Sequence record: NC_047880.1
Direction: 5' to 3' (one strand)
Length of the DNA stretch: 64,000 bases
Positions within the stretch are counted from its first letter, which is position 1. Each line of letters starts with the position of its first letter. Of the stretch, positions 634 through 62,588 are shown piece by piece. A model generated the notes under the pieces. It was not told the DNA's origin. It saw only the letters and a list, made by a program, of their open reading frames with translations, and made no database searches. Made by a program: the position numbers and the translations under genes.

Positions 634-1377
634 TTAGAAAAACTGACTGTCACATTCACCTAAACTACAACGTAGTCTTTGGTATGCAGCAACACGTTCT
701 TCAATGAGATTAATATACTTGTCGTCGATACTGAACTTCGCTCGTAACGGCGCTTCATAGTCATCGAGTAAGTGATGCCTCTTGTACACGTCGGCACGAA
801 GAAGCGGTGTGCTAACCCCAGTACATTCCATAATACTAAGATCAATTTTGTCGGCATAAATGAAAGGCCGCTCCCGTTTACACAGGATATAATCTATCTC
901 ATGTAAATTAAAGAGTGTGAAATTCATATAGCCAATAATGAACTCTGCGATAAGCCTGAACGATTCAGACATATCTTGCCTGAGCTGTTGTGTGAGTATC
1001 TGACCAATCAGCGGAGTTATTTCTTGTCGCAGATCGGTCCAAGTCTCATACAGCGGCACGGGAAAATCTTCAGGATGTGCTTCCATAATAGCAAGCACAT
1101 TACGCTCCATATCAGCGAACGATGTTAGAACGTCAGCAGCGTCAACTTCCGTGACGACACCACTGCCTGTTAGAATGAATCTGCATTCAACGTCTCTTAA
1201 CCACGATTCAGATGCGGATAAGTATTGGAGTAAAATTTCTCTGGCTCCAGCAGTGAAATCATGCCGTTCGGAGTCAAGAACCTCACTGAGCATGAAAGCC
1301 TTTGCCTTGTAGAAATCAATATAACGTTCGGCAGTAAATCGTCGAAACGCTATGTTATTTCTCAAGTAGCCTGTCAT
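634..1377 (-). CDS. Hypothetical protein (247 aa)
   Basis: Long ORF with an ATGA overlap to the upstream gene; no recognisable motif. Confidence 0.75.
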   Translation of the reverse strand: MTGYLRNNIAFRRFTAERYIDFYKAKAFMLSEVLDSERHDFTAGAREILLQYLSASESWLRDVECRFILTGSGVVTEVDAADVLTSFADMERNVLAIMEAHPEDFPVPLYETWTDLRQEITPLIGQILTQQLRQDMSESFRLIAEFIIGYMNFTLFNLHEIDYILCKRERPFIYADKIDLSIMECTGVSTPLLRADVYKRHHLLDDYEAPLRAKFSIDDKYINLIEERVAAYQRLRCSLGECDSQFF

Positions 1378-5238: not shown

Positions 5239-5248
5239 GGGCTAACTC

Positions 5249-5452
5249 CTAACCAGTCAGTGTTGTCCAATCTGGCTGACCCGCTTGACCCGCTTCTGGA
5301 TTCTTTACTTTCGTGTTGTTGATAGTCATACGAATCCAACGAACATTTCCAGCTCCGTCATCCCAGCGAATCTTCGTGCCACCGTATGCTAAATTAGCTA
5401 CCCATCTGTCTGTGCTCGGATCTTTGAAAGCTAAACGTGCATAAGCAGGCAT
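5249..5452 (-). CDS. Small fibre-associated protein (67 aa)
   Basis: RBS GAGGAG upstream; fills the gap between larger genes. Confidence 0.75.
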   Translation of the reverse strand: MPAYARLAFKDPSTDRWVANLAYGGTKIRWDDGAGNVRWIRMTINNTKVKNPEAGQAGQPDWTTLTG

Positions 5453-5469
5453 AGGTTACTCCTCTTAAA

Positions 5470-8346
5470 TCATTCTACTTCGCTAGGTTCCCAGCACAGT
5501 ATAGGTCTACGCCACACTTGGAATACGCCGATAGGTGAACCAAGCCCCGAACTGACTTTACAGTCCATTGTAAGTCCGCCTGAGTTGCCACTACGCATTA
5601 AGATGTTCAGGTCTTGCTGCCATGAAGCACGTCCGCAAGAATCAGCTTCAAACAAACCTTCCCACACCATATCAAATGCACCATTCCATGCGTTGAAGTG
5701 ATGCGAAGAATAAGCACCGTCACCAACAGGACAAAGAACCATGTACTGGTAATCTTTGACGCAAGGAATGCCGTAGTTGTTACCACGCGGTATAGCTGTA
5801 CCGTTGTTGTTGAAGATACATTCCCAACCTGTGCGGTCTGCTGAACCTGTTGTAAGGAACAGAGGACGACGAATGATCATCATGATACCATTCTCTGCAC
5901 CATTGTCGTCATTAGTCTCACAGTACGCATTACAACGCAACGAACGGTCTACAGTGAACGTTGTAGAGTTCGAGAAGTCACGGCAGTAGAAGTTTGCACC
6001 CCACTTAGGCAGGTACTCAGTTGGTGGAACAAAGAAATGACGTTCAGCAAGTTCGACAGAACCATAACGGTCATACGCAAACACGATGTATTCGTAGCCT
6101 GCATCAATCGGAATGTTATGCCCTTGAGAACCAACACCATTCCATTTCCAATGCACCTGCCAGTCATTCGAATCGCGCGTAGCTTCTTCCGTGATAAGCT
6201 GATACTTACGTTCGTAGATATGCCAGACTTTACCTTCTTGGGTTGTGTTGATATACAACGAATTAGGGTCATTGATATTTCCGTTATCCGTACCGCAATA
6301 AACTTTATGACTTGCACCAGCAGAGTTATAGATAGTGCCAGACCCGATAGAACCGAACATATCAAAGTTCATCATCAAGTGAGAAGTACACATCTCATTC
6401 TGACCAGCACCATCTGACGTTGTGAGCAGATACTCATTCAGGTCTTTGAACGGATACTTGACCAAGTTCGAGTTAGCTCTGTTCACCACATGCACCCAGT
6501 CATGCGATTGAATCTTAGGCACAGGGAAGCAAGGGTTAGTGACGGACACGACAAAATTCTTCGTCTCATACATAGGCAGTTTCTTGAAGCGGTTATCACG
6601 AATAGTTACCGTGTGCTTCATGCCGTATGTCTTAGCACCATCAATACCACCGAGAACTTTGTAGTAGTCGATGTGAGCGCTCTTAGTGTTATCAAACACA
6701 TTCGAGATGCTCATGGCCAGAGAGTTGTTTCTGTCTGTACCTGTCGTGTATGCAACACCGCCGTTATCGAACGCATAACCAACTGAGTAATAACTATCAG
6801 GGTCACTTGAGTTCGGTCCCCAGTACATCTCGTTGACTGCATTACCTTCACCGAGGCCAGGACTACCGAAGCAATTGTATGCACCGCGATACTGATAGCT
6901 ACCACTTTCGTACACGAGACGACTTGCACCGATACGATACATTGCAGCAGGCAGTCCACCCTGAACACGGTTGATGTTCGCAGTATCATAAGACACAACA
7001 AACACGTAGTAGTCACTGCTAAGGCTGTTAAGGAACTGAGCCATTTGTGCAGCATACGTTGAACCAGGCGCTACGCCTTCCGCAGAAATATGAATGTCAT
7101 ACGAACGACGATCAACAAGTACACGGTCGGACTTACGAATCACATACACGTTGAAACCTCGTGTGTCTGTGTAGTACGTGCCGTTATAAATTGTATAGCC
7201 AGAATCGCCAGTGTCTAAGTGACGTTGATAACCAACAACGTGTGAGAACAAGGTGCTTCGTTGTTGTAGGCTGAGTGCGTTATCGTTCGACCAACTGACA
7301 GACACATCACCAGCAGCCATACGTGCAGCCCAATCATCAGGCTTGTACGGATAAGTTGTTACGTCAAACGATGCGCTGAATCCGCTTCCGATTTCCACAC
7401 AGCACGGGTCACGATAGATGATCGCTGGATCGAGAACGATATCATCAGGGATATCAACTTGACCACAATAGAACTGCAACCACGTTCCTGGCTGACCACC
7501 TAATGAACCCGGCCCTGGAGGTGTTGCAACAGAGAAGTCATAGATAGCACTTAGTCTGTACGTCTGCTGGTTATGCAATGCAGGAATGTTAGTCCATGCT
7601 ACGTGATTACCGAACACATTGATTGAACGGTTACGCGCTGTTTCAGTAGCAGCGATGTATGCAGCACCGTTAGAACGAATACCTAAAGGGCTGTAGATAG
7701 CGTTAAAATTGACGTTACCTTCATACGGACCCTTTTGCAGTACGATTATGCTTGTTCCGTTTCGGTGTGCCTCACGGAGCGCTGTACACATAGCAGCAGG
7801 CAGTGTTTGAGCACCAGCGGACAGTAATAAAACGACACAAGACCATTGCTGAAACGACTTATACGTACCGTCATATCCGTATGCACCAGCGTTAATCTCT
7901 TGCCAGCTATGAGCAACCATATCGAGTGGCATACGCTTCATATAGCTGACGAGCATTCCCCAAGACTCCATACTGTTTTCATCTGAGACAGAGGCTTGGT
8001 CGGACATGACTAGCATTGTGCTGCCAGCAGTCAGGTTAGAGTTGTAACCACGTTCAATCAGGAACTGACGCAGTACACCCATGTTGTTGATGCTTTTGTT
8101 TCTGTACGTGCCCAGCCAACCGTAACTACCATTGACCATAGGACTATCGTCACGAATGAAAGCACCGTTCATATAGACAGAACCGTAACCGCACACGTAA
8201 GCGAGAGAGTGTCCATCTACGACGAAAGAGGTGAAACGAGAACTATCGACTGCCATTGCATCAACAGCAGCAGCAGAGCCATCGCCAGGACTGCCCGAGA
8301 ATACTGGTGTCATGCCTCGCGCATACAAGCAACTTTGTTGCAGCAT
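5470..8346 (-). CDS. Tail fibre / receptor-binding protein with an ILEI (PANDER/GG-lectin)-like domain (958 aa)
   Basis: RGFNVYVI...DRRSYD...AQFLNSLSSDYYVFVVSYD...GAS...YRGAYNCFG matches the ILEI pattern; remainder is beta-rich and aromatic. Confidence 0.65.
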   Translation of the reverse strand: MLQQSCLYARGMTPVFSGSPGDGSAAAVDAMAVDSSRFTSFVVDGHSLAYVCGYGSVYMNGAFIRDDSPMVNGSYGWLGTYRNKSINNMGVLRQFLIERGYNSNLTAGSTMLVMSDQASVSDENSMESWGMLVSYMKRMPLDMVAHSWQEINAGAYGYDGTYKSFQQWSCVVLLLSAGAQTLPAAMCTALREAHRNGTSIIVLQKGPYEGNVNFNAIYSPLGIRSNGAAYIAATETARNRSINVFGNHVAWTNIPALHNQQTYRLSAIYDFSVATPPGPGSLGGQPGTWLQFYCGQVDIPDDIVLDPAIIYRDPCCVEIGSGFSASFDVTTYPYKPDDWAARMAAGDVSVSWSNDNALSLQQRSTLFSHVVGYQRHLDTGDSGYTIYNGTYYTDTRGFNVYVIRKSDRVLVDRRSYDIHISAEGVAPGSTYAAQMAQFLNSLSSDYYVFVVSYDTANINRVQGGLPAAMYRIGASRLVYESGSYQYRGAYNCFGSPGLGEGNAVNEMYWGPNSSDPDSYYSVGYAFDNGGVAYTTGTDRNNSLAMSISNVFDNTKSAHIDYYKVLGGIDGAKTYGMKHTVTIRDNRFKKLPMYETKNFVVSVTNPCFPVPKIQSHDWVHVVNRANSNLVKYPFKDLNEYLLTTSDGAGQNEMCTSHLMMNFDMFGSIGSGTIYNSAGASHKVYCGTDNGNINDPNSLYINTTQEGKVWHIYERKYQLITEEATRDSNDWQVHWKWNGVGSQGHNIPIDAGYEYIVFAYDRYGSVELAERHFFVPPTEYLPKWGANFYCRDFSNSTTFTVDRSLRCNAYCETNDDNGAENGIMMIIRRPLFLTTGSADRTGWECIFNNNGTAIPRGNNYGIPCVKDYQYMVLCPVGDGAYSSHHFNAWNGAFDMVWEGLFEADSCGRASWQQDLNILMRSGNSGGLTMDCKVSSGLGSPIGVFQVWRRPILCWEPSEVE

Positions 8347-12991: not shown

Positions 12992-15318
12992 TTTGGTTCA
13001 ACCTTAATGCACAAGTTACCGATCAGATTAGAGCCGTAGCTTGTAATCTGTGCGTCAGCGATACGGACTTTCGCAACGATATCAATGAAGCCTTGTGGCT
13101 GGTTTTCTGCGAGGATAACAAACATCTGTGTTGCAGAGACATTTGAATATGCAATCACACCTGTATCAGAACCAGATAACGCATTGAAACCAGCAACGCC
13201 TGTGCCTTTAAGACCACGACCGTATTCAGCTTCTGATGTGCCTGGAGTTTTGAAACTCAAGACATACTCGATACGTTCTTTACCGCTAGTTGCAGCAAAG
13301 CCAGGACCGAGTTGACACTGGAAGTCTACGGTACACGTCATCATAACACCGTTCTTAAACTCGATGCGCTGCGTGATCGTAAGCTCTTCCGTGTCAGCCT
13401 CTTTACGCTGAATGTTGTAGACGTTAGTCGGGTCTGCGTCTTCTTTGAGTGCTGCATCGCTACTGATTTTAATCTCAGGCCATGAGCCCGTGATCGATAT
13501 ACCTTCACCTGCGATAATCTCAGGCTTAGCGATAGGCACATCAATAGGAGGCAGACCTTGACGCTTGAACATGTAGCCTGTTGGCGTAGGCACAACGTCG
13601 ATGATAACACCATCAACTGAACTGTCTTTCGAACCAACAGCTTTAATGTTCTCGAAGATTGTCACTTCAACCAGCGTATCAGCGGGTACGACAGACGTTT
13701 TCTTCAAGACATTGCCAGCGACTGTGAACTCTGAACCGTGAATAGTCAGACCGCCCATGTTCACTACGCAATACGCTTTACCCAAAGGACTTGTTGGCAG
13801 AATGAAAGTATCTGCATCGTATGGGAAGTTGTATTGAGCAACACGAACGCGAGTAGACCAACCAGCGCGTTCTTCATAGCGAGCAACGTAGAAAGTAAAC
13901 TTCTGACCAGACGGAATAGCCTGAGTCATTGTCACTTTGTTTCCGTTAGCAAGCTTGTAGCTGGTGGACGGCTGCCATGTGTTACCGACAACACAGAAGA
14001 TCATGTCTGCGCTATCGACTGTCTGGTTGCCTAACGTGTAAGTAACGGTCTGGCCATCACCAACACCTTCAACAAGTTCAAACAGAACAACGTGGCCTTG
14101 AGACGGTTCGATACGGAACTGTCTGAGGTCGAGCGTCAGTTGCTGTTCAAGATACGACGAAAGCAGAAGCTGATCTTCTTGCACAGAGTAAGCTGTACGA
14201 GGCTGCAAGACACCACTTGTACCGAGGAACAAATCGGTAGAGCTGTCAAGAATCTCGGTGAGCTGATAACGCAGCGTACTCGGCAGACCTGTTGTTACGA
14301 CAGAACTAAACAGCAACTTGCCTGGAGGTACGAACAGACTTGCAGTAGTCTGGCGCGACTGACCGACAGGGCCCCAATAAGGCTTCGTGTTCTTGCCTCG
14401 GAACAATGCCCATGTATCTGGAACATCATTGTTATCAGGCCAAGGCAGCCCAGCAGAAGCAACAGTTGGGTTAGTGATTCTGCGCCACACAGCAATAGTG
14501 GTCTGTGCGCTAATGAATGGAATGACTGCATCCATATTCACTAACTGACCTGCTGTGTATTTGAAGTGACGACAAGCGCCAGCACCAGGACCAGCGATAG
14601 TTTGAATGATTACTACTTCACCCTCACTGAGAGAAGTGATAGAGGCAATCTTAAACGTATTCGCATTGATGAACCCGCTACTGACAGCACCGCTGAAAAT
14701 ACGGTCGTGCTCACTGAAAGACCAGTAATAAGAACCGGCACCGTAACGAGATGCTAGGCCGGGCGACTTACTACCATCAGAGTTGATGTGCAGGTCTAAC
14801 ACGGACACAGCATTGAATACGTTATCTTTCAATGAAGGTAAATTCGCAAGCGTTGGGATGCTCGGAATAGATGTGTAGTCAGCCATCTTAACAGCAAGAA
14901 TCTTTTGAATATCCTGCTGAATATGAACGAGCAAACTTACACGGCTGATAGAATTCGGTACTGCAATAATCGGTTCAGCGAGAACAACGTGACCGAATGG
15001 TTGGTTGTCTTCAAGCAGAATCAACAGTTCACCGACACGCTTCAATGACTCACCAGCAGCGTATGGGATCTTAATGTCGAAGATGAAGCGAGCGCTATTC
15101 TCAGTAAGAACCTGCACGTAAGACAATGCGCCGGATGCAAGCTCGTTGCCAAGTAACTGCTCAGGAACCTCAGACGGATTTGAACCGACGAAGTCACCTG
15201 CTTTGAATGCCACTGGGGTTATTGCAATCCCACCAGCATTAGCGTTAGCAACGGCCTGTTCTCCCTGAGGCGTCAAACGCAGAGCGTCAACGTAAATGGA
15301 TTCAGTGGTGGCCATCAA
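12988..15318 (-). CDS. Baseplate/tail-fibre attachment protein with tail-collar-like N-terminus (776 aa)
   Basis: N-terminal [12 protein letters not shown]...[10 protein letters not shown] resembles the fibre-base domain of P2 gpH-like proteins; repeated T(F/Y)TL...GV.QP...Y modules. Confidence 0.65.
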
Positions 15319-21392: not shown

Positions 21393-21811
21393 TACTGCGC
21401 CCTCATAGCAAATGTTACGGACTGCGTTGCTTCCAATTTCGGACAGCGCCATGAAATGATACAGGTGTACGTTTGTTCGTATAGTGAGCTGGCTGTACAC
21501 GCTGTCTTCACATCAACAACGTCGGCTGTTATGCCATTCGCAGGGTCTTCAAGTGCGATGCGCATGTAGGTTGCAATCCAATCAGCAGTTGTCTGATCGA
21601 ATGGTTCGAATAGATACTGATACACATCACAACCGAATGACTCACGCCACTTACGGGACTTCTTGCGCGTACCAACGATCATTAGAATCTTCTGGACAAT
21701 GCTGTCCATGTTCTGCACGTTATCACGAGGCTCAAGTTGAATCCACGCATTCAGATCACAATAGATGCGCTCGCTAACAGGAACATTTATCAGTTTGACG
21801 TAAATTCCCAT
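21392..21811 (-). CDS. Baseplate wedge protein, gp25-like (139 aa from MGIYVKL)
   Basis: KILMIVGTRK.SR.WRESFGCDV.QYLFEP gp25 signature; TGATG overlap with the PAAR stop. Confidence 0.85.
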   Translation of the reverse strand: MGIYVKLINVPVSERIYCDLNAWIQLEPRDNVQNMDSIVQKILMIVGTRKKSRKWRESFGCDVYQYLFEPFDQTTADWIATYMRIALEDPANGITADVVDVKTACTASSLYEQTYTCIISWRCPKLEATQSVTFAMRAQ

Positions 21812-22101
21812 CAGCCGAATCTCACGTTTGAGCTTCCACCAGAAGCAGTATCGCCACACGAATTGCCGTCACCAGCACGTTGAGCAGGCTTACCGTTAAC
21901 TCTGACAGAAGATGATGAAGTTGCTGTGCCTGTATGTGGAGGGCTATCTTTCTTCCAGTGGGGTTGATATGAATCTCCAACACGCACTGAGCCTTTGCCA
22001 TTAACAAACACATTACCAGAAGCAGAAACAGGCACTACAGGGAAATAGCCGTTATGGCCTGTAGAACGGTCTGTGCCTAAGCGAATCGCTTTTTGTCCCA
22101 T
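21811..22101 (-). CDS. PAAR-repeat spike tip protein (T4 gp5.4-like, 96 aa)
   Basis: AIRLGTD.STGH, VFVNGKG.VRVGD, H...PPH, V.VNGKPA.RAGD..SCG. Confidence 0.92.
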   Translation of the reverse strand: MGQKAIRLGTDRSTGHNGYFPVVPVSASGNVFVNGKGSVRVGDSYQPHWKKDSPPHTGTATSSSSVRVNGKPAQRAGDGNSCGDTASGGSSNVRFG

Positions 22102-22123
22102 GATAATCTCCTTTGTTAAGCAT

Positions 22124-22130
22124 AAATTAG
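22124..22130 (-). promoter_or_regulatory. CTAATTT candidate late-promoter motif
   Basis: Between the terminator at 22150-22176 and the AAGGAG RBS of the PAAR gene. Confidence 0.55.
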
Positions 22131-22149
22131 CTTGTTACGTGCGAGAAAC

Positions 22150-22176
22150 AAAAACGGGCAGCCTAATGGCCACCCG
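22150..22176 (-). terminator. Intrinsic terminator closing the non-coding interval
   Basis: CGGGTGGCC-ATTA-GGCTGCCCG-TTTTT. Confidence 0.85.
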
Positions 22177-22208
22177 ATTTTTGCGCTTGGAATTTTGTCG
22201 TTGTCCCC

Positions 22209-22355
22209 TCACACCCGAAGCGAGTGCATTGTAGCGTGAGCTACGCAGCCGGGACGAATTTCAGAACTAGCCTCTTGACAGACTGGTTCCGCTCTCGATA
22301 GCAATCGACCAAGCAATGCGATTACTATCAACGACATAAAGAACAGGAAGAACAT
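22209..22355 (-). CDS. Possible 48-aa small membrane peptide
   Basis: AGGAG RBS 5 nt before ATG; MFFLFFMSLIVIALLGRLLSRAEPVCQEASSEIRPGCVAHATMHSLRV. Overlaps predicted hairpins, so it may be non-coding. Confidence 0.4.
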   Translation of the reverse strand: MFFLFFMSLIVIALLGRLLSRAEPVCQEASSEIRPGCVAHATMHSLRV

Positions 22356-23368
22356 GAGTGCTCCTATGCCGTTACTACATTTCTTTGCAAAGAACTTTTG
22401 ACTCAGAATTTTTGGTACGCTCGCGACCCAACTGTCACAAGTCTCGTACTTTCGATTCTGTTAACCGCCCGTGCCAGGAATTGCTCCTAGTCTAATCAAA
22501 TAAGTTAAGGGGGAACCTATCCGACTCGAAGAAGAGTTGAGAGCACATCGGCATCTGCGGTGGTTGATACACTCTTTAACGATCATCTTAATACTACCTC
22601 TGTGCAAGAACCTGATCGACCGCTAACGATTCAAGCACAGATGCCACGAACAAGAAGGACGATATGCAGTGGGCACTGAACACATCCCGCTATGCACTCG
22701 GACATTAGTACATAGAAGGCTGAACACAGCTTATGGCAAAGCGTTGAGTCCCCGTATCCCATCTGAAACAGGTCTAACTCAAACTCGACTACATCCTAAA
22801 CAAGGGCTAAGGGTTCCTTGCTCATATGTGCCTGCGGATGTTACTCACTATTTAACGATTCATTGTCACCTTGAGAAAACCTTTGCAGACTTGAATCGTC
22901 CGCTTTAGAATCTGCATCAGTTCCTCTCGCTGTAGTGGAAGCGTTCTCTCGGTGGGAATATATGACGAAGCGCACCCTGTTCAGGCTACTTCCCAATGCG
23001 CACTAAGGTGAAAGTCAGAGTACGCATCAGGCAGCAGTCGCCGCAGTACAGCTATACCTAAAAGACTGGCCACAACACGGAGTTTCGCGCTCCACCAGTC
23101 TACGTGCCTAGAGGCCGGGTCCGTGCTAAGAGTTTCCGTTGGGCTTGGTTTGCGTCAACAGCAGAGAACCGGGCTATCACGTGGGTGCAGGAGTTATTCC
23201 TCACTATTACAATGCCGAAGCATATCCTGCTGGAGGCCGATACAAATCAACTAGACTAAGTATCTGTAGTATGTCGCTATGACGTGTAACGAAAAACATG
23301 CAAACGTTACGCGCATACAGATATTACTATCTGCAATTCTTATTTACAGATTTTCTGCAAAATGACCG

Positions 23369-25129
23369 TTAGAAATTCTTTCTTTCTACGTTCGTGTACA
23401 GAGTATCGTACGGATCAGAGTACAGCTCGGAACTACGCTGTGCGCGAACAGTCACATAACCTGTGTGACGATTGAACGCAATGATTTCAACCGTAGGCTG
23501 CTTCGGCTTAATCGTCGCATAGATAGGCGCGTTAAGCATCGGCTCGTCTGCAAGCAGTTTATCAACAGCAGGCAGTTGGGCAGCAGACAGCTTAGGTAGA
23601 TTGAAACGAATCTCTGCGCGAGTACGACCGAACGCCAGACGGATAGAACCTTTAGTCAGTTCACCACCGTTGTTGCGCAGATAGTTCATGATACGACGCG
23701 CAACACCTTCCACTTGGCCACGAGCAGCAGGGTCCATAAGACCGTCGAAGCTGATAGCGCCAGTAGGCTGGTTGATTGACAGATGCAGACCAGTGTTGAA
23801 GTAACCCTCTGCTAACAGGCGATACACTTCACGCGCAATCTCTGCGTTGTTCGTTGAGATGATTGGCGTTCTGATCTCAGGTGGATTCTCTTTCTGAGGC
23901 TCTGTGTACTCAACAGCACCAGAAGAATAACCCATGCTAATCTTTTTCGCTTTAGCATATTTCGCTTGCAGCAGGCCACTTGCGCGAATGATCACTGAAC
24001 CATTCTTAGACAGGTCATACAACTCGTCTGTACTGAATGTACTGAACAAGAAATAGTCCTGAGGAATAGCCATACGTGATACTGCTTCGAGTGCTTTCTT
24101 CTGCGCGTCTTTAATCGTTTCACCAAACACGATACGACTGCGATTCGGCTGAGCAGGACTGACAGGGAAGAACGCGCCGTACACAACACGACTATCTTTC
24201 TTAATCGGTTGTTCGGATTTAACCTTCTTGCCACCAGCAAGAGGAGGTAGCTTAACACCAACGAGCTTGCCTTTGGTGATAGCTTTGTTCGCAACAACAG
24301 GCTTCAATGCGTTGAGCAGTTTCGACAGGTCAGCAGCATCAAGCACCTTCTCCAGAGGAACAGCTAAGTTCTGCGGGAGATAGTGTTTCTTGCGGAACAT
24401 GTAGATGACCGTGTCTTTCTTCAACTGAATCGGTGTTGCCATGTTACGGCCAACGACACCAACAGGTGAGAACGTATTTACTTTATCAGCAGCAACAGAA
24501 CCGAACTCTTTATCGAACACGGACTGGCCAATGATGTTAGCAACACGCAGATGACCACGAAGCGTAAACACAATCTTCGGTTCATCTTTCAGACGCAGTT
24601 CATAACGATCGCGGTTGAGATACACAAGGCTGTATTTATCACCCTTCTCAAGTTCGAGATCGTATTCATCGGACGCATCATCGAAGTGTACTTTCTTACC
24701 TTGATAGGTAGCATACACACGAGGACCAGCAGACTCAGAAGCAATCTGCATTGCTTTACCGCTATTCGAAAGCGCTACAGCAAAGTCCGTTACAGCGTTT
24801 TGCATCTCCAGTGTAGAAGATACATGACGCTCAGGTTGAGGTGACCCGATTTCCAAATGCACAGCGCTTGAGCTGGACATGAACACGCTTTTGCCTGTTG
24901 GATTAACGCCAGCGAAGTGCATATCGCTGATACGTTCAATCTCATTAGCATTAACGTGAGGCATCGAGATAGATACACCAGCAGCAAAGTCAAAGATTTC
25001 ACCTTGACGCCAAGCATATCCGATGTTGTTTGAACTAAGTCCGATAAACGCATCGCCCACTAAGCGAACGGATGTCGGCACGATACCCAAGTCACGAATG
25101 ACGGGGTTCAGCTTTGGTGAGATAATCAT
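23369..25129 (-). CDS. Hypothetical protein, possibly head-internal (586 aa)
   Basis: Long ORF; several S-X-S motifs in the first 133 aa followed by a domain shared with three other proteins in the window. Confidence 0.7.
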   Translation of the reverse strand: MIISPKLNPVIRDLGIVPTSVRLVGDAFIGLSSNNIGYAWRQGEIFDFAAGVSISMPHVNANEIERISDMHFAGVNPTGKSVFMSSSSAVHLEIGSPQPERHVSSTLEMQNAVTDFAVALSNSGKAMQIASESAGPRVYATYQGKKVHFDDASDEYDLELEKGDKYSLVYLNRDRYELRLKDEPKIVFTLRGHLRVANIIGQSVFDKEFGSVAADKVNTFSPVGVVGRNMATPIQLKKDTVIYMFRKKHYLPQNLAVPLEKVLDAADLSKLLNALKPVVANKAITKGKLVGVKLPPLAGGKKVKSEQPIKKDSRVVYGAFFPVSPAQPNRSRIVFGETIKDAQKKALEAVSRMAIPQDYFLFSTFSTDELYDLSKNGSVIIRASGLLQAKYAKAKKISMGYSSGAVEYTEPQKENPPEIRTPIISTNNAEIAREVYRLLAEGYFNTGLHLSINQPTGAISFDGLMDPAARGQVEGVARRIMNYLRNNGGELTKGSIRLAFGRTRAEIRFNLPKLSAAQLPAVDKLLADEPMLNAPIYATIKPKQPTVEIIAFNRHTGYVTVRAQRSSELYSDPYDTLYTNVERKNF

Positions 25130-61806: not shown

Positions 61807-62588
61807 TCCAATACCAGATAGGTGACAGTGAGTTTAGGTTTAGCAGGTGATGTGCCAATATTTTTCCAGCGCCACGAGATAGTTGGTGTATTATCTCTGT
61901 TTGACAAGAAGCTATATCGACGAAGCTTTCTGATCACAGGATTGCCTTCGCTATCCTCTTCATAGAACACGCCATCATCTGAAAGGAAATTAGCAGTAGA
62001 GCGGAATAAATACGGGTTTCTGTCTGTTCGTTCCGAAGATTCGAAAGCGGACAGTTCGATATCAAACGCATTGAGTTCCACGCGCTGCAACATCAGTGTA
62101 CGGTTCATCTGTAGATCGAAGTCAACAGAAGCACCAGGCTGAATGTACGCACCTGCTTCATACTCAACAGTCTTGCGAACGCCCATGTTCTCGCTACCGC
62201 TCATGTCTACCCAGAACATCGTACCGTTTGCGCCTGATACAAGCGTCATGCCTGCGTATTCAGGTTCAGGTACTTGCGAACTTGGGTCAAGACCTACGAC
62301 AGTTAAACCTGTTTCATCCACAGCAGTGACGAACGGTGACTCAAACTTATAAGCAGAGCCTCCGAACTTCGCATCCTTCCACGTCACGTTGTCTACATCC
62401 AACTGATACATCTTGTTGGTCTCGGTGACGTAACACAATGTCCCAGGCTTTTTATTACCAGCAGACATTGCATCACGATCAGCAAGAGTAGCCAGACAAC
62501 GCATACCCCCACGAAGGTACTTGTCTTCGAGGAGGTATGGAAGTGCTGTAGATGCAGGCAACAAGAACGAAGTCATGTTAACCGGCAT
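61803..62588 (-). CDS. Virion structural/fibre-associated protein (261 aa)
   Basis: N-terminal LRGG...LADRDA....K.GTLCYV...YQL module is common in phage fibres. Confidence 0.65.
   Translation of the reverse strand: MPVNMTSFLLPASTALPYLLEDKYLRGGMRCLATLADRDAMSAGNKKPGTLCYVTETNKMYQLDVDNVTWKDAKFGGSAYKFESPFVTAVDETGLTVVGLDPSSQVPEPEYAGMTLVSGANGTMFWVDMSGSENMGVRKTVEYEAGAYIQPGASVDFDLQMNRTLMLQRVELNAFDIELSAFESSERTDRNPYLFRSTANFLSDDGVFYEEDSEGNPVIRKLRRYSFLSNRDNTPTISWRWKNIGTSPAKPKLTVTYLVLE

Follow-up and report, generated by a model that had tools for sequence, protein, structure and literature searches.

The window analysed here, a stretch of 64,000 nucleotides (nt) from sequence record NC_047880.1, comes from Erwinia phage vB_EamM_Y3 (Y3), a Sasquatchvirus of 261 kb. 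Between the genes of a gp116-like protein and a PAAR protein it contains a gap (22102-23368) that is 100% identical to positions 84102-85368 of the record and carries no annotated feature there. All genes around the gap lie on the minus strand. The gap marks the border between a nucleotide-metabolism module, with genes for a nudix hydrolase, an MmcB-like protein, thymidylate kinase, gp117 and gp116 upstream, and a baseplate module, with PAAR, a gp25-like baseplate protein, a wedge subunit and a 1508-amino-acid (aa) tail protein downstream. An initial annotation of the window, made from its letters alone, had read the gap as an independently terminated large non-coding RNA, possibly of a new class. 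Our analysis confirmed that 22102-23368 holds no minus-strand open reading frame (ORF) of at least 60 aa, the longest being 48-51 aa, and indicated that the gap almost certainly encodes a real, conserved structured RNA of a new family.

The predicted fold of the minus strand is more stable than that of randomized sequences. The full 1267-nt strand folds at -420.6, compared with -384.8 ± 9.5 for dinucleotide shuffles (z = -3.8). Among the controls, the plus strand gave a minimum free energy z-score of -0.25, and two coding regions gave 0.0 and -0.5. The 949-nt body alone gave z = -2.86, with 0 of 20 shuffles as good, and its complement gave +0.20. Overall, the minus strand outperforms its shuffles at a z of about -3 to -4.

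Relatives of Y3 carry the same gap, and their sequences have changed in ways that preserve base pairing. Searches with blastn detected partial similarity in 46 phage records, all of them Erwinia or Dickeya jumbo phages, and each record has a ~1.3-kb un- or sparsely annotated stretch between a gp116 homolog and PAAR. Pairwise identity among the three main lineages (Y3; Alexandravirus; SNUABM_13/7 type) is 53-60% with conserved length, which makes them suitable for a covariation test. The RNAalifold consensus of 15 aligned gap sequences (alignment A1) comprises 350 pairs in 55 helices, and compensatory double changes occur in 145 of these pairs, as against 41-46 in column shuffles and 7-32 per ~600 columns in flanking coding alignments. 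The consensus energy of A1 is -533, compared with -283 to -310 for column shuffles and -444 for the antisense alignment. Similar results were obtained with four JA11-like sequences aligned separately (-304 versus -208 and -222 shuffled; 47 compensatory pairs versus 21-27 in shuffles). Between close relatives, stem substitutions mostly keep the pair, with 40 kept and 4 lost for S17 versus S1 and 46 and 4 for S30 versus S1.

The unit consists of five parts, in the order promoter-like motif, ~970-nt non-coding RNA, AU-rich linker, ~190-nt 3' domain and terminator. Its features, with the flanking genes, are as follows.

23369-25129, minus strand: gp116-like gene, the upstream neighbour; 586 aa, 100% identical to Y3 gp116.
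23335-23352, minus strand: promoter-like 5' motif AATCTGTAAATAnnAATT; the 18-nt core is invariant in 15 aligned relatives.
23237-23319, minus strand: variable 5' leader hairpins; helix 23270-23260 with 23247-23237 has 10 base pairs (bp), 9 of them compensatory.
23055-23238, minus strand: 5' multi-helix domain; 46 pairs in the consensus fold, 17 of them changed on both sides.
22984-23040, minus strand: long interrupted hairpin (helix 3); 19 bp, 6 of them compensatory (RNAalifold).
22735-22921, minus strand: module A (paralog 1), including helices 4, 5 and 6; its helices have 9, 2+6 and 8+5 compensatory pairs.
22664-22730, minus strand: connecting hairpins, including helix 7 (22718-22687); 13-bp helix, 8 pairs compensatory.
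22400-22651, minus strand: module B (paralog 2); 56 pairs in the consensus fold, 33 of them changed on both sides.
22371-22399, minus strand: AU-rich linker, apparently unpaired; 0 consensus pairs in RNAalifold.
22184-22370, minus strand: 3' domain; helices with 1, 3, 5+4 and 3+4+3 compensatory pairs (RNAalifold).
22209-22355, minus strand: small 48-aa ORF, starting 7 nt after an AGGAG ribosome-binding site; unannotated in Y3.
22146-22176, minus strand: intrinsic terminator; 9-bp stem (7 G-C) at 22176-22155, followed by a T-run.
22124-22130, minus strand: CTAATTT motif, the boundary feature before PAAR, from a motif scan of the window.
21811-22101, minus strand: PAAR gene (PF05488) with its own ribosome-binding site and start.

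Eight helices had been proposed in the initial annotation. Helices 1-7 and the inner arm of helix 8 match helices supported by covariation, while helix 8 has an outer arm (GGCATCTGTG/CGCAGATGCC) that occurs in Y3 only and is not conserved. The 5' domain contains helix 1 (23230-23187, with a UUCG hairpin), an interrupted helix (23182-23102) and helix 2 (23101-23063). A covariance model of this domain, R1, scored 148-216 bits at 19 loci. When the 19 hits were aligned to R1, 97.7% of cells were paired, compared with 85.3% after shuffling, and 21 pairs were changed on both sides, compared with 11.1 ± 1.8 (0 of 500 shuffles). Sliding the partners by 1-3 columns lowered pairing to 35-44%. The long interrupted hairpin that follows has the conserved flanks CUGCCUGAUG and GCAUUGGGAAG. 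Its motif is present in 23 of 23 close loci, and nhmmer also located the hairpin in L033 and in loci of the Yoloswag, SNUABM_5 and JA11 types, where it has undergone compensatory changes.

Modules A and B are paralogs that arose by internal duplication and share families of repeats. Module A includes helices 4 (22921-22880), 5 (22828-22792) and 6 (22786-22739) together with a hairpin that has a large conserved loop. Module B includes the inner arm of helix 8, a long variable hairpin, a large-loop hairpin (22455-22409) and a UAGCGGU/ACCGC helix that is 100% paired, with three kinds of pair occurring at one of its positions. Both modules carry an AGCGGx/xCCGC-type helix, the blocks AGUG..AAC..CCGCAG and GGxGUAAAxGAG, and a hairpin with a 17-nt conserved loop whose closing stem, CYC/GRG, covaries. 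A second covariance model, R2, was built from the module B hairpin only. It scored module B at 34-68 bits and retrieved the module A hairpin in Alexandra- and Snu-type loci at E-values, which are rough for all our covariance models, of 2.6e-5 to 2e-4; it missed module A in Y3 and matched no module in the distant lineages. The AU-rich linker downstream of module B is a possible processing site.

The RNA body of ~970 nt is interrupted by 9-23 stops in each of the six frames in all 15 relatives, and ten ORF pieces of the gap gave no match in Pfam. GenBank records place 'hypothetical proteins' inside the body, and the position and strand of these genes vary between close relatives (L012:1089-1238(-), L017:1190-1351(-), L013:670-813(-), L020:630-1097(-) and 919-1194(+), and L021:630-1106(-)), suggesting that they are probably over-annotation. 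A pseudogene or a tiling of small ORFs was rejected on the basis of the stops in every frame, the lack of Pfam matches and the complete flanking genes. A group I or group II intron or a small self-cleaving ribozyme was likewise rejected, with no model match at E up to 10 and gp116 aligning end to end to its stop. A DNA-level element was excluded because the strand asymmetry, the G-U pairs and the terminator all point to RNA.

The RNA matches no family in Rfam. Across the whole window, cmscan with Rfam 15 at gathering thresholds gave no match, and at E up to 10 the segment 21900-23600 returned three chance-level matches to unrelated small RNAs only. The covariance models of GOLLD, ROOL, OLE, raiA and HEARO gave no match at either threshold, and the Rfam scans matched no known riboswitch aptamer class. 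ARAGORN found neither tRNA nor tmRNA in the 64 kb, and tmRNA, RNase P RNA and 6S RNA were detected by neither covariance model nor ARAGORN. A scan of 185,579 bacterial and archaeal genomes for the hairpin-C motif produced 24 matches in unrelated taxa, all of which we attribute to chance because the full nhmmer profile matched none of them; the scan thus found no cellular homolog. Full-text searches of the literature returned no description of this RNA. With covariation in the relatives and no Rfam match, the core of the initial proposal, a large, independently terminated, structured RNA that may represent a new class, is strongly supported. The designation as purely non-coding has to be amended, since the last ~190 nt hold a 48-codon ORF with a ribosome-binding site.

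The predicted product of this small ORF has a hydrophobic helix at its N terminus and a tail that varies. All 20 gap sequences keep the frame open, as do Yoloswag (gp109, 53 aa) and the JA11-like contig L032 (7836-8039, 67 aa); the indels of the ORF are all in frame, and the other frames contain 1-6 stops. Codon-position entropies over the first 20 codons are 0.58/0.23/0.66, with the conserved second position that a membrane helix would be expected to show (PAAR, for comparison, 0.25/0.24/1.06). Neither Pfam nor PHROGs provided a match to the product. The conserved ORF has been annotated at L012:1787-1945, at L017:1754-1897 and as Yoloswag gp109.

The nucleotides of the small ORF also form covarying hairpins. 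The 3' domain folds into a hairpin (22370-22333) that masks the ribosome-binding site and start, two further hairpins (22330-22296 and 22291-22262) and a three-way junction (22255-22203). The 3' strand of the masking hairpin (22336-22329) can pair instead with 22203-22196, downstream of the ORF, and this long-range helix has two covarying flanking pairs (G-C with U-A, and U-A with C-G). In addition, loop 22314-22309 pairs with 22190-22185 to form a pseudoknot, which reads CUUGG/CCAAG in the Y3 type and close lineages, CUCGG/CCGAG in Yoloswag and UUUGG/CCAAA in L032. Yoloswag and L032 share the architecture of the 3' domain. The whole reads as a pseudoknotted domain gating translation of a real small peptide, translation being predicted here from sequence. 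We consider it rather probable that the peptide is translated, and control of its translation by the alternative pairing is put forward more tentatively.

The predicted transcript has recognizable boundaries on both sides. At the 5' end, the Y3, Alexandra and Snu types share an invariant block that extends the promoter-like motif to 23320. The motif directly follows the gp116 homolog in Yoloswag, SNUABM_5, JA11 and Yersinia phage fHe-Yen9-02, and the first two of these have an intrinsic terminator of gp116 ahead of it. Another copy in Y3 (L083:3421-3438 (+), corresponding to ~14297-14314 of the Y3 record) is located between a 2OG-Fe(II) oxygenase gene and, 61 nt downstream, a small gene that adjoins the asparagine synthase gene. 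Yoloswag also has a second copy (L024:6296-6313), 55 nt before the small membrane-peptide ORF. These extra copies suggest a small regulon with its own class of promoter. At the 3' end, the strong terminator noted in the initial annotation is indeed present and conserved, with compensatory loop-proximal changes (CCAUUAGG / CCUUCGGG); it is also kept in JA11, in L032 and in more jumbo-phage contigs.

The CTAATTT motif reported ahead of PAAR was likewise found, at 22130-22124. It occurs nine times on the minus strand of the 64-kb window and never on the plus strand (first bases at 61993, 55363, 42124, 40598, 27679, 22130, 15353, 5397 and 2210). Eight of the nine copies lie outside ORFs of >200 aa, and seven of those eight sit 5-41 nt before a gene start. 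CTAATTT is probably a promoter or leader motif of structural (late) genes in this phage clade. A search with a T4 late-promoter octamer gave no match.

Homologs of gp116 with 40-51% identity led to more distant loci in Yoloswag, SNUABM_5, fHe-Yen9-02 and the Dickeya JA11 group, and six metagenomic contigs with gp116 homologs represent further lineages. The gene is always syntenic with the RNA, and homologs (40-69% identity) occur in every RNA-bearing lineage. In the distant lineages, nhmmer and R1 recovered the initial hairpin of the 5' domain along with the long hairpin, module A blocks, the small-ORF region and the terminator, all syntenic and with compensatory changes. R1 on its own gave weak syntenic matches in JA11-like loci, and in Yoloswag-like loci it missed the 5' domain. 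Aligning JA11 globally with L032 was uninformative. In IMG/VR, the hairpin motif was found in 14 contigs, 13 of which are jumbo-phage contigs of the clade and one a 9-kb fragment, and the terminator motif in seven contigs, two of them new relative to earlier scans. The corresponding scan with the 5' motif was swamped by chance matches. As far as searched, the RNA family is confined to one clade of ~250-270-kb Erwinia, Dickeya and Yersinia jumbo myoviruses.

In the distant lineages, gp116 and PAAR lie 1.75-2.4 kb apart and extra small genes separate the RNA body from the small ORF. The RNA locus thus resembles a hot spot at which small accessory genes are inserted. The inserted small genes are translationally coupled (L032:7374-7574 and 7574-7780 (+); L024:5479-6269 (+)), and one encodes a predicted membrane protein. 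A further ORF of ~40 aa lies between the RNA terminator and PAAR in SNUABM_3, 2910A, SNUABM_33, AD1, Yoloswag and SNUABM_5 (L014:2025-2147, L018:2028-2156, L019:2028-2156, L016 ~2030-2158, L024 ~6780-6905 and L025:7083-7208) and is absent from Y3.

Based on these structural and comparative data, we regard the Y3 RNA as a new class of large phage RNA, probably with two functions. That 23335 to 22146 (minus strand) forms one ~1.2-kb transcription unit giving a bifunctional RNA of this new family has, in our judgement, about an even chance. In such a unit, the RNA body would be made from its own promoter, on a schedule different from that of the CTAATTT-driven structural genes, and would act as RNA in the infected cell, serving as a protein scaffold or as a self-assembling particle like other large phage RNAs. 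The 3' domain would constitute a translationally gated mini-cistron with its ribosome-binding site and start locked in a hairpin. Since one strand of the masking hairpin can pair downstream of the ORF instead, the fold of this domain could determine if the small membrane peptide is produced. The peptide may serve as membrane partner of the RNA, in analogy to the membrane proteins of OLE RNA.

Whether the body works in trans as RNA appears to us evenly poised. The genes inserted in JA11-like and Yoloswag-like phages, together with the second 5' motif of Yoloswag, indicate that evolution can part the body from the small ORF, which favours a trans-acting RNA over a pure leader. A giant ornate RNA of ~1 kb or more that acts in trans while the jumbo phage infects its host, either as a GOLLD/ROOL-like RNA-only particle or as a membrane-tethered ribonucleoprotein with its own peptide, would form a new class; we give this reading somewhat less than an even chance.

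Several observations speak against the reading of a bifunctional, trans-acting RNA. The transcript is so far a prediction, as are its ends and any processing. The 5' motif is tentatively assigned to a promoter class other than CTAATTT by its position; the motif has diverged in one metagenomic lineage (L032), and a scan for sigma-70-type promoters gave no site on the RNA strand. The comparison covers only ~7 effectively independent lineages, and the RNAalifold consensus fold is imperfect and incomplete, as better helices were identified outside it. In the 3' domain, the pseudoknot is backed by two compensatory events and the alternative pairing by two covarying positions. The last 33 codons of the small ORF have flat entropies (0.73/0.81/0.77) with no coding periodicity; constraints acting on the RNA could therefore keep the frame open as a by-product. 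An antisense-target search within the window gave only chance-level matches of 10-11 nt, and our searches produced no partner protein, ligand or target of the RNA. Furthermore, Y3 has no terminator between the RNA body and the ORF, an arrangement that fits a cis-acting leader equally well.

For this last reason, a giant cis-regulatory leader stays a serious rival, although we consider it rather unlikely. Under this model, the ~970 nt would be the 5' untranslated region of a small-membrane-protein operon, sensing a ligand, a protein, a tRNA or temperature to act on translation or stability, with no function in trans. In its favour, the small ORF directly follows the body on the same strand, the ribosome-binding site and start are predicted to be buried in a hairpin with which a long-range pairing (two covarying pairs) competes, and in JA11-like phages the extra small genes between body and ORF, one of them for a membrane protein, are part of one terminator-bounded unit. 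However, a body of ~1 kb, comprising some 45 helices and one duplicated module, far exceeds any known leader, no known aptamer was matched, and the conserved switch elements all fall within the 3' domain and none in the body. The Yoloswag small ORF, moreover, has its own 5' motif and lies three genes away from the body. A distinctly less probable alternative is a decoy for counter-defence or host takeover, that is, a sponge or mimic that titrates a host RNA-binding protein, nuclease or immune sensor through the paralogous large-loop hairpins as repeated binding sites. The two hairpin copies with their 17-nt conserved loop would suit such a role, as would fast sequence evolution with the structure kept and the lineage-specific insertions of small genes, which are typical of accessory hot spots. 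This idea is purely analogical, however: the Rfam scans revealed no similarity to a known decoy RNA family, and no defence-related domain was found nearby.

The initial annotation had also suggested a role in virion assembly. An RNA that is packaged or that scaffolds baseplate or tail assembly would be in keeping with the PAAR, gp25-like and baseplate wedge genes immediately downstream, but the suggestion gained no support and we consider it very improbable. The 5' motif is unlike the CTAATTT of the structural genes, its other Y3 copy precedes metabolic genes, the upstream neighbours are nucleotide-metabolism genes, and no feature of the sequence links the RNA to structural proteins. Hardly credible is the view that the region holds no functional RNA at all and represents chance helices, a mobile intron, a decayed protein gene or a tiling of small ORFs. 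In line with it, several GenBank records do annotate small hypothetical proteins within the region, but these genes shift in position and strand, every frame has 9-23 stops, and Pfam returned no match. In addition, no intron or ribozyme model matched at E up to 10, the flanking genes are complete, and the compensatory changes are far above those of shuffled and coding controls.

To our knowledge, only a handful of bacterial or phage RNAs of >500 nt have complex conserved folds, and the functions of GOLLD, ROOL and OLE are not established. The Y3 RNA is longer than most of them and unusual in its dense covariation, its domain duplication and its embedded gene for a small peptide. We liken it to GOLLD, ROOL and OLE by kind only; every testable criterion of membership gave a negative result.

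GOLLD and ROOL are phage or prophage RNAs of several hundred to >800 nt with multi-domain, covariation-defined folds and no established function, and they are usually located near tRNA islands (PMC12286853). The Y3 RNA resembles them in being phage-encoded and large, with an elaborate multi-domain structure defined by covariation, and it further recalls GOLLD in combining a conserved with a more variable part. In contrast to both, it matches neither Rfam model even at E up to 10, has no tRNA in the window, is longer, is internally duplicated, contains a small ORF and belongs to enterobacterial jumbo phages. The OLE complex localizes to the membrane and has membrane-associated protein partners, including OapA (PMC12265935, PMC10898510). 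The genetic linkage of a large structured RNA to a membrane protein is common to both cases, with the Y3 peptide encoded within the predicted transcript itself. The Y3 RNA differs in giving no match to the OLE model, OLE being a cellular RNA of Bacillota of ~600 nt, and in its candidate partner, an embedded 48-aa peptide rather than a separate multi-pass protein.

The joining of a structured RNA part with a short ORF is also reminiscent of the dual-function RNAs. Staphylococcal RNAIII and enterobacterial SgrS are 200-500 nt long, base-pair with mRNAs and encode a small, often hydrophobic peptide. The Y3 body is two to five times larger, and the search within the window found no target complementarity. 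Type I toxin mRNAs of the hok kind combine a small hydrophobic peptide with a masked ribosome-binding site and long-range 5'-3' pairing. Y3 has a small hydrophobic ORF, a masked ribosome-binding site and long-range pairing as well, but has no evident antisense RNA gene and no family match. A single sigma-70-like site was found on the opposite strand, at 22882-22911, ~530 nt from the small ORF. The Y3 unit, moreover, belongs to a lytic phage, shows conservation and synteny, and includes a 1-kb structured body that is absent from hok-like systems.

If the trans-acting reading is correct, this would be the first large structured RNA of its kind in enterobacterial phages, and its host-phage pair is amenable to laboratory culture. 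Because isolated, cultivable Erwinia, Dickeya and Yersinia phages carry it, expression, localization, partners and three-dimensional structure are directly measurable, and such measurements could open the old question of the role of large phage RNAs to direct testing. The analysis also corrects the annotation of the locus, with regard both to the spurious small genes over the RNA in several GenBank records and to the small peptide gene missed in Y3.

Pfam and PHROGs searches of the ORF pieces, the small ORF and the neighbouring genes identified only KMPT-N, PAAR and gp25 domains, all in the neighbours. KMPT-N (residues 138-200), known from phage 'polyvalent' proteins, is the sole recognizable domain of gp116, and a profile search with gp116 found no relative in the PDB by sequence. 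The statement in the initial annotation that the other intergenic gaps of the window are shorter than 90 nt is essentially right. The single exception, 231 nt at 5239-5469 (minus strand) between ORFs of at least 80 aa, is filled by an ORF of ~70 codons with a good ribosome-binding site and has a CTAATTT inside. In SNUABM_16 and SNUABM_22 (L020 and L021, 627-701), the annotated gp116 homolog stops 75 nt early, leaving extra sequence before the 5' motif.

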